A stretch of DNA of 63,215 bases, counting the filler, from Perkinsus chesapeaki ATCC PRA-425 (Eukaryota; Protista; Perkinsozoa), in NCBI GenBank assembly GCA_013115145.1. It is 6 parts of 6 records of this genome, joined end to end, with 100 filler letters (N's around TTAATTAATTAA, not from the genome) between each part and the next. Parts side by side here need not be neighbours in the genome. Positions count along the whole stretch, not along the records: positions 61,863 to 63,215 come from JAAPAO010002022.1; 5 more parts are not named here. One strand, given 5' to 3'. Positions 61,863-63,215 of this stretch are shown here, one piece after another (position 1 is the stretch's first letter; every line of letters starts with the position of its first letter). The position numbers were made by a program, and so were the translations under genes. Under the pieces are notes generated by a model, which was given only the letters and a program-made list of their open reading frames with translations, did no database searches and was not told where the DNA came from.

Positions 61863-62121
61863 TCGTACAGACATTAGGGCGAAGCTTCGCTGTGATCGAC
61901 AGTGAAGAGGCAGGCAGCTTGGCAAAAGAAACCAAGCAAAAGCGGATTTAGTCAGGCAGACTCACTCATCGAGGGTATTCATTCCCACTATTGGTTAGCT
62001 TAATCCTTCATATTGATATATACCATAGTATATTCGGACTTAGCCGCATTAAGTCAGTTGGTTCGTCCAACATTCAAGCAAAACTTTACATCCGATTTTG
62101 CTGGATTGGATTCTTGAATAG

Positions 62122-63215
62122 GAAATACTGATCGGTATGGAAATGTGCATCATTTCTATCAGTCGGCAATTCCCGCCAATCGACCAAAACAAATGTGCCA
62201 ATGCGGTAGAGGCCGAGATGGGCACCTTACCACTTTGCTTCCCTGGTACGGCAAGAGTCCGAGTTAAAGGAAAAGGGATGATAACAATGGACAAGTGAGC
62301 TGAAATGTCTCCACCTTAACTGGAGTTGCTTACAAAGTCAGCTTGGAAGTCGGAGATCTCGTGCTCACTGCGGACACCAATGGCACAGTTAGTTTTCAGA
62401 AGATGGTTGCCTGGTTGCATTACAGTCCTGACGAGGTGAATCAGAAGCATAACAGATCAACATCCACCTCTTTGAAGTTGTGATTGAAATCAATGGAGTT
62501 GAGACTTCTTATCCTTACTTAGAGCAACATTCTTTTTCAGTGAAGAAATTTCTCTTCTCTTGTTTTTAAGCGGATCAGTTCCACGACAGTGAATCATCCA
62601 AGTTGTCATCTCTTTATCTCAGCTGGCTTCGTTTATACAGCTGCACGGGAAGAAGAAAGTATCGGTGACTCTATCGGCGGACCACTTAATTTACGATGCC
62701 ATAAGGACGACGTTCGTCACAGCCTCCCACGCTCGCACGATAACGACTTTGGACCCCTTGGATGGAGCATGCAACACCACAGTACATTTAACCGGCTCCG
62801 CCACAGTTCATTCAAGAGGTATGCAGCCCACGCGACAGTGCAAAAATCCAAAGAGAACGTGGAATTCGTTAACTGTCAATGTAGAGTTGACCGTGGTATG
62901 AAAAATCGGGTTCCAATTCCAACCTTGGCTCTTTGATAGACAATGGAGTTTCCTGCTCTTCAACTATATGATCATACCGTGACTCCTACGGTATCAAAAT
63001 GAGTACCTTATTCAGGTATTTTCTGTCCGCTTACATCGAATGGTACCATAATAGTAGATGATGCCCTCTGCAGCTGTTTTGTCTCGCCGAAAGGGTTCCA
63101 TTTCACAATAAGGTGAATGTTTTCATTGATATCTGTCCAGTTTTTCCCTCAGTCACCTTCACGGTCTCATCGCCACGGCTCCCCTTAGGCTGCTATACCA
63201 CAATTACAATACTCC
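62122..63215 (+). CDS. Hedgehog-type Hog (Hint + SRR) autoprocessing domain protein, incomplete at both ends
   Basis: GT-AG introns 62295-62341, 62436-62622, 62819-63015 and 63113-63152 give in frame ...GTLPL-CFPGTARVRVKGKGMITMDNLEVGDLVLTADTNGTVSFQKMVAWLHYSPDELASFIQLHGKKKVSVTLSADHLIY...RGIFCPLTSNGTIIVDDALCSCFVSPKGFHFTISHLHGLIATAPLRLLY. Confidence 0.9.

Follow-up and report, generated by a model that had tools for sequence, protein, structure and literature searches.

A Hog domain of the Hedgehog type can be divided so finely by introns that no open reading frame (ORF) betrays it, and the question raised by this locus is whether such a domain is encoded in the last piece of a stretch of DNA from the protist Perkinsus chesapeaki ATCC PRA-425 and, if it is, whether the gene belongs to this organism and is still in working order. 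The stretch, called the window here, is 63,215 nucleotides long and consists of six parts of six records of assembly GCA_013115145.1 joined end to end; the piece in question (positions 61863-63215, from JAAPAO010002022.1) comprises 1353 nt with a G+C content of 44.6%. With a probability of about 0.78, the locus is a genuine Hog gene fragment of the labelled organism that, as predicted from its sequence, is probably functional. Two points make it stand out, namely that introns conceal the gene and that a natural histidine occupies the position of the catalytic general base.

A gene model across five visible exons

Hog coding sequence is found on the + strand in five stop-free segments whose frames differ from one segment to the next. 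When these are joined by script at the coordinates listed below they give a stop-free reading of 169 codons (509 nt), from the codon of Cys1 at 62236 to the end of the piece. The initial annotation had proposed that four canonical introns join the Hint blocks in frame, and the joined reading agrees with this: the introns measure 47, 187, 197 and 40 nt, every one runs from GT to CAG with a pyrimidine-rich 3' end, and their G+C content (0.37-0.45) is somewhat below that of the exons (0.43-0.52). The gene had also been described as absent from the ORF track, which is indeed the case, because the longest ORF in the piece has 115 aa and lies in a frame unrelated to Hint. Hog genes whose exons are only 20 to 65 codons long slip past ORF-based and automated annotation. 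The features of the locus are as follows.

62137-62235, + strand: upstream part of the exon 1 frame, 33 codons from ATG to Leu(-1), putative C-terminal end of the cargo
62236-62294, + strand: exon 1, Hint part (block A), beginning CFPG; PF01079 11.7 bits, profile 13-31
62295-62341, + strand: intron 1, GTGAGC...GTCAG, 47 nt; sole in-frame, stop-free GT..AG solution between the flanking blocks
62342-62435, + strand: exon 2, LEVGDLVL...WLHYSPDE, with His46; PF01079 17.2 bits, profile 33-61, and Atlas look-alikes
62436-62622, + strand: intron 2, GTGAAT...TCTCAG, 187 nt; unique donor, four possible acceptors
62623-62818, + strand: exon 3, ..FIQLH.., block B VTLSADHL and the variable middle of the Hint fold; by-eye match to Drosophila HhC 52-75
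62819-63015, + strand: intron 3, GTATGC...TATTCAG, 197 nt; unique donor, two possible acceptors
63016-63112, + strand: exon 4, (G)IFCPLTSNGTIIVDDALCSCF...., motif J with Cys137; PF01079 24.0 bits, profile 140-160, PDB alignment and Atlas
63113-63152, + strand: intron 4, GTGAAT...CCCTCAG, 40 nt; two donors and two acceptors keep the frame
63153-63215, cut by the end of the piece, + strand: exon 5, HLHGLIAT-APLRLL-YHNYNT, start of the first helix of the sterol- or adduct-recognition region (SRR/ARR); motif comparison

All of the conserved stretches that had been read from the unspliced DNA are recovered from this model. CFPG opens with Cys1 (codon 62236-62238), LEVGDLVL opens exon 2 at 62343, and WLHYSPDE..FIQL closes exon 2 and resumes in exon 3. 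The SxxH element TLSADHL has its histidine at 62683 (codon 62683-62685), GIFCPLTSNGTIIVDDALCSCF straddles the junction of exons 3 and 4, and the H..H…APLRLL element is present in exon 5 as HLHG...APLRLL. Two junctions divide a codon: exon 1 ends with the AA of Asn20, the C of which is supplied by exon 2, and exon 3 terminates in a split Gly codon.

To list the possible splice sites, the five conserved blocks were held fixed and all frame-keeping, stop-free GT..AG introns between them were enumerated. Among these options there is no alternative to intron 1 or to the donors of introns 2 and 3. Intron 2 could also end at 62640, 62652 or 62655, intron 3 has one further in-frame acceptor (intron end at 63003), and for intron 4 the frame is likewise kept with a second donor (63095) or a second acceptor (63140). 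The chosen junctions have the best pyrimidine tract and CAG among the candidates, and the acceptor chosen for intron 2 also preserves Hedgehog residue numbering. It could be argued that the resemblance to Hog is a product of chance, built by the free choice of splice sites, given that GT..AG freedom provides open paths through many sequences and that junctions in this gene have alternatives. In-frame joinability alone is weak evidence, and the weight rests on what the joined exons encode. Against chance, three independent matches to one Pfam family out of 24,736 are collinear and abutting, catalytic residues fall at exact Hedgehog numbers and the controls are empty, and these leave the chance reading with next to no probability and effectively refute it. 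Six residues would be lost, and the Drosophila spacing from S-C-F to A-P-L-R-L-L reproduced exactly, if donor 63095 were paired with acceptor 63152; that donor (GTTCCA) is much weaker than the one at 63113 (GTGAAT).

If left unspliced, every exon frame meets a TGA at the donor or at most 27 codons beyond it. The first stop on reading through is TGA at all four donors (62296-62298, 62481-62483, 62899-62901 and 63114-63116), a uniformity that is probably due to chance. Translation through the introns under any ciliate code is out, as the exon frames change and a TAA follows in intron 1.

The model is open at both ends. The frame is still open at the final base of the piece, so that the gene is cut at its 3' end (63215). 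On the 5' side, the frame of exon 1 is open for 38 codons before Cys1, with an in-frame TAG at 62119-62121 and an ATG at 62137. The 33 residues that precede Cys1 include two cysteines, lack a clear signal peptide and match nothing in Pfam. Residue -1 is Leu, as opposed to Gly in Hedgehog, and no Hedge domain ending in Gly(-1) is present in the 33 upstream residues, with the proviso that more exons may lie beyond the piece. An acceptor-like site, catttctatcag (tttctatcag), is found at 62162 (window 62150-62163), which suggests that the true exon may begin there and join cargo exons situated outside the piece or at its very start. The description of the gene as 'five-exon' is accurate for the five segments in the piece, but with the gene cut at 63215 and perhaps further exons upstream, it covers the visible part only.

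Family assignment and catalytic residues

The exons were scanned individually against 24,736 Pfam families, and PF01079 (Hint) is the sole family matched by any of them. Exon 1 from Cys1 (E 0.2), exon 2 (E 0.0041) and exon 4 (E 3.4e-5) match at the profile positions given above, and the three matches are collinear even though the genomic frames differ. The matches of exons 1 and 2 skip only profile position 32, which is the codon divided at junction 1. A search with the PF01079 profile had been put forward as a check on the spliced peptide; exons 1, 2 and 4 do match it singly, but each lies below the gathering score of 29.7 bits, and it is the rough sum of 53 bits, taken over exons that were scanned separately, that lies above it.

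Elsewhere in the locus, Pfam returned nothing for exon 3, whole or in halves, for exon 5, for three upstream ORFs and the longest antisense ORF, or for the 33 codons before Cys1, whether alone or combined with exon 1. These are the ten control segments, seven of them non-coding or off-frame and three of them pieces of exon 3 or exon 5, and none gave a Pfam family at E<=10; Rfam and repeat searches were also empty. A phmmer search of the PDB aligned exon 4 (31 aa) weakly, with E of about 0.5, to residues 125-145 of the Drosophila Hedgehog chains 1AT0 and 6TYY, its S-C-F falling on the S-C-Y that contains Cys143; the same search with exons 1, 2, 3 and 5 and with the block B part of exon 3 found nothing relevant. 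Independent support comes from the language-model comparison of the ESM Atlas, where exon 4 most resembles clusters named 'Hedgehog protein Hint domain' (score 0.93, 174 shared features) and the look-alikes of exon 2 all belong to Hint-clan families; exon 3 was not recognised. Exons 3 and 5 have no statistical match of their own and are assigned by position, frame and by-eye match.

The Hint active site consists of C1, D46, T69, H72 and C143, and the Drosophila HhC sequence is printed together with it (PMC12054796). Aligned by eye to residues 1-75 of that sequence, the spliced peptide needs no gap and has 16 identities (about 21%), and in this alignment C1, H46, S69 and H72 have exactly the Drosophila HhC numbers. 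Blocks common to both are C-F, L-x-(V/I)-G-D-x-V-L, N-G, F-(I/V)-Q-L-H, T at 67 and H-L at 72-73. Cys1 (62236-62238) opens C-F-P-G in block A, and the block B histidine is present as His72 (62683-62685). The general base Asp46 of Hedgehog is replaced by His46 (62418-62420) and Thr69 by Ser69 (62674-62676), the latter a conservative change in which the hydroxyl is kept; both substitutions had been noted in the initial annotation and are confirmed at these residue positions of the spliced peptide. Cys137 (63075-63077), in the S-C-F of motif J, is the equivalent of Hedgehog Cys143.

Exon 5 reads H-x-H...A-P-L-R-L-L at 63154-63195, within which an H..P-x-R-L motif occupies 63178-63195. Its A-P-L-R-L-L core parallels the A-P-M-R-L-L of Drosophila. 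A conserved 'HPR' motif opens the first SRR helix (PMC7906309), and the spacing from His to Pro in exon 5 is two residues greater than in that motif; the counterpart of the A-P-x-R-L-L stretch of exon 5 in the survey of Burglin (2008; PMC2362128) is motif K. About 20 SRR residues are contained in the piece before the cut at 63215. For this reason the initial designation as a Hedgehog-type Hog is well founded in the Hint coding sequence, Cys1, the SxxH, the Hog cysteine and the start of the SRR, but extends to only about 20 residues of the SRR itself, and the further claim of an intact autoprocessing and lipidation module goes beyond what such a length, together with the empty RNA runs described below, can support. 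A contig of 1814 nt assembled from DNA run X3 spans 62036-63215 and continues for 634 nt beyond, and the remainder of the SRR, possibly with the stop codon, should thus be available in public data.

From its sequence the gene product is classed as a Hog-type domain, in which a Hint fold is combined with a sterol- or adduct-recognition region, and not as an intein. The assignment to Hog rather than to inteins or bacterial Hint domains follows from the motif J cysteine, which replaces His-Asn, and from the SRR-like helix that comes after it; at the place of block G in inteins the peptide reads A-L-C-S-C-F-V and then enters the SRR-like motif, with no His-Asn/+1 nucleophile. It is highly improbable that the domain belongs instead to another branch of the Hint superfamily, be it an intein, a bacterial intein-like or PT-HINT domain, or Vint. 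Such an origin might be suspected from the best Atlas look-alikes of exon 2, which are bacterial PT-HINT fragments, and from exon 3, which is unrecognisable alone. Yet PF01079 is the only Pfam family matched by any exon, the S-C-F of motif J puts the Hog-specific cysteine where inteins have the His-Asn of block G, the A-P-x-R-L-L motif of the SRR follows, the introns are of spliceosomal type, and neither an endonuclease insert nor an interrupted host protein is apparent. The motif J cysteine, the SRR motif and the sole match to PF01079 put the intein, BIL and Vint readings out.

Relation to known Hog proteins and a possible mechanism

Hog proteins outside animals were surveyed by Burglin (2008; PMC2362128), who described them with non-Hedge N-termini in the alveolates (dinoflagellates, Cryptosporidium and Tetrahymena), in red algae, mosses, a cryptophyte, a jakobid, a haptophyte and a cercozoan (Cercozoa), and in the glomeromycete fungus Glomus. 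The initial annotation spoke of reports from some alveolates, which is correct for that group but understated, given the many more groups in the survey. Most non-animal Hog proteins carry motifs J and K (PMC2362128). The Perkinsus gene resembles them in its Hint domain, which carries motifs J (S-C-Y/F) and K, in its non-Hedge N-terminal region and in its non-animal eukaryotic host, and differs in that the search with exon 3 found no close sequence relative and that neither the cargo nor the full ARR/SRR is visible in the piece. The locus fits the description given by Burglin; as the family and its spread among protists are already established, it adds a member and not a principle.

The closest described counterparts in detail are the Hedgehog domains of Drosophila (HhC, 1AT0) and human (SHhC). 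In common with these, the peptide has Cys1 in C-F-x, identical numbering up to residue 75, the elements P-L-T-x-x-G-T-I-(I/V)-V...S-C-(F/Y) and xxH-L, and A-P-x-R-L-L at the opening of the SRR. It departs from Hedgehog in having His for Asp46, Ser for Thr69 and Leu for Gly(-1), in the lack of a Hedge domain in the upstream sequence seen and in the division of the domain by at least four introns. Relative to Drosophila HhC, the middle of the domain is six residues shorter and the distance from S-C-F to A-P-L-R-L-L six residues longer.

A second line of comparison is offered by an engineered enzyme. Hedgehog with the substitution D46H/D303H (PDB 6TYY; Zhao et al. 2019 via PMC9163320) keeps its structure and its transfer of cholesterol and tolerates a broader range of sterols. 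The variant has an RMSD of 0.4 A, the same pKa and a similar efficiency with cholesterol (PMC8529194, PMC9163320), and it gains activity on coprostanol and epicoprostanol (PMC8529194, PMC9163320). In addition, D46H Hedgehog autoprocesses in cells (PMC12054796). The Perkinsus domain shares with the engineered protein a histidine at position 46, the remainder of the active site being Hedgehog-like; the difference is that D46H/D303H is a laboratory mutant, whereas the histidine is natural here, in another background (Ser69, Leu(-1)) and with an activity that is predicted only. The natural His46 Hog thus parallels an engineered D46H Hedgehog that has a wider sterol range. It had been proposed that His46, along with Ser69, points to a possibly different nucleophile, an argument that is weakened because D46H/D303H Hedgehog retains cholesterol transfer and is changed only in its wider tolerance of sterols. 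His46 is compatible with sterol transfer, possibly with relaxed specificity.

Hog domains on non-Hedge cargo also occur in the nematode proteins Warthog, Groundhog and Quahog and in choanoflagellate Hoglet. For the nematode Hedgehog-related proteins and Hoglet the adduct is uncertain, which accounts for the name 'ARR'. The cargo of these proteins (Wart, Ground or CBD) and their signal peptides have no visible equivalent in this piece. Class 1 inteins have in common with the gene the Hint fold, Cys1, the xxH of block B and a first step by N-S acyl shift; they differ in possessing the block G His-Asn/+1 nucleophile, where the Perkinsus protein has an SRR-like helix and no ligation of a C-extein would be expected.

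By homology, the locus would be the central portion of a nuclear gene with introns, encoding a protein with a Hog domain of the Hedgehog type at its C-terminal end. In the first step of the proposed reaction, the thiol of Cys1 would attack the carbonyl of Leu(-1) to form a thioester by an N-to-S acyl shift, presumably with the assistance of Ser69 and His72. The thioester may then move to Cys137 to give a branched intermediate, as has been shown at Cys143 of Hedgehog (PMC12054796). In the third step, His46 would activate the hydroxyl of a sterol, of another bound nucleophile or of water, held in place by the C-terminal recognition region, and the N-terminal fragment would finally be freed, possibly with a lipid esterified to its new C-terminus. 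In this scheme, transcription of the gene, the cleavage step, the kind of adduct and the cargo's identity are inferred from homology only. The coding sequence itself, its splice-compatible structure, its membership of Hint and the presence of the catalytic residues are directly shown.

A bolder version of the scheme would make the protein a natural Hog enzyme with a swapped general base (His46, Ser69 and Leu(-1)) that ligates a non-cholesterol sterol or another lipid to a very short peptide, a suggestion that must be considered decidedly doubtful. Were ATG 62137 the true start, the N-terminal peptide would be 33 residues long and contain two cysteines, and were the swapped-base reading true, it would imply a lipidated peptide signal in a protist and a relaxed sterol specificity that is ancestral to, or natural in, Hog enzymes. 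The gene would offer an inexpensive route, through cloning, to the question of which nucleophiles are employed by protist Hog domains, the organisms' own sterols or others.

Origin and state of the gene

Five DNA runs, which come from two samples and two studies and all bear the same species label, contain the stretch; its word depth is 464x in DNA run X3 and about 15x in DNA run X7. Two RNA runs carry the species label, the only ones to do so, and neither of these tiny sets (about 5 Mb each) contains any part of the stretch. Proteins related to the gene were sought with exon 3, for which an exhaustive HMMER search of 1.84 billion representative proteins found no relative; two matches, to multi-repeat proteins of the WD40 and LRR/STAND types, were rejected as spurious. 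A metagenome scan with the same exon confirmed none of 600 pattern matches, and ten metagenomic loci retrieved with the DNA pattern for P-L-T-x-x-G-T...S-C-(Y/F) proved random on translation. Exact look-up of eight ORFs of the window in a collection of 15 billion proteins found none of them. In the libraries searched, the gene has neither an annotated product nor a close relative.

These data bear on the possibility that the DNA is a contaminant from another organism, such as a small animal rich in Hog genes. The contig is only about 1.4-1.8 kb in length and the Atlas clusters nearest to exon 4 are mostly of rotifer proteins, both of which would be in keeping with a foreign source. However, the full stretch recurs at 464x and about 15x in DNA runs of two samples from two studies with the same species label, the lack of any close relative among 1.84 billion representative proteins speaks against a well-sequenced animal, and the 33 residues before Cys1 are not a Hedge, Wart or Ground domain. 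Contamination is consequently rated as very unlikely.

A further explanation to be weighed is that the locus descends from a Hog gene but is decaying or silent, a pseudogene that is no longer transcribed or functional. The stretch is found in none of the RNA runs (two tiny ones with the species label), no product with these exons is present among the 15 billion proteins, and there are three departures from Hedgehog, at Leu(-1), His46 and Ser69. Of these, the His46 substitution is proven to be active in Hedgehog, and further observations speak against decay: 169 codons are open over five exons with all splice sites canonical, Cys1, His72 and Cys137 are intact, and the substitutions listed from DNA run X7 fall in introns and not in exons. 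A pseudogene is on balance unlikely, and the reading of the locus as part of a probably functional Hog gene of Perkinsus is preferred.

The substitutions listed within the gene in DNA run X7 are at 62317, 62544 and 62545, all of them intronic. In exon 3 (62690-62749), the same run contains an alternative unitig of 60 nt that differs in one letter, with a summed depth of 45 against 15, which implies a polymorphism near 62719-62720 in this coding exon. Upstream of the gene, at 62004-62065, a multi-allele bubble is present in X3 and X7 (T>C at 62034, C>T at 62035), made up of several unitigs of 60-61 nt with a summed depth of up to 1167 against 464; it looks like heterozygous or strain variation common to independent samples. 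DNA run X7 also has a deletion of 1 nt at 62096.
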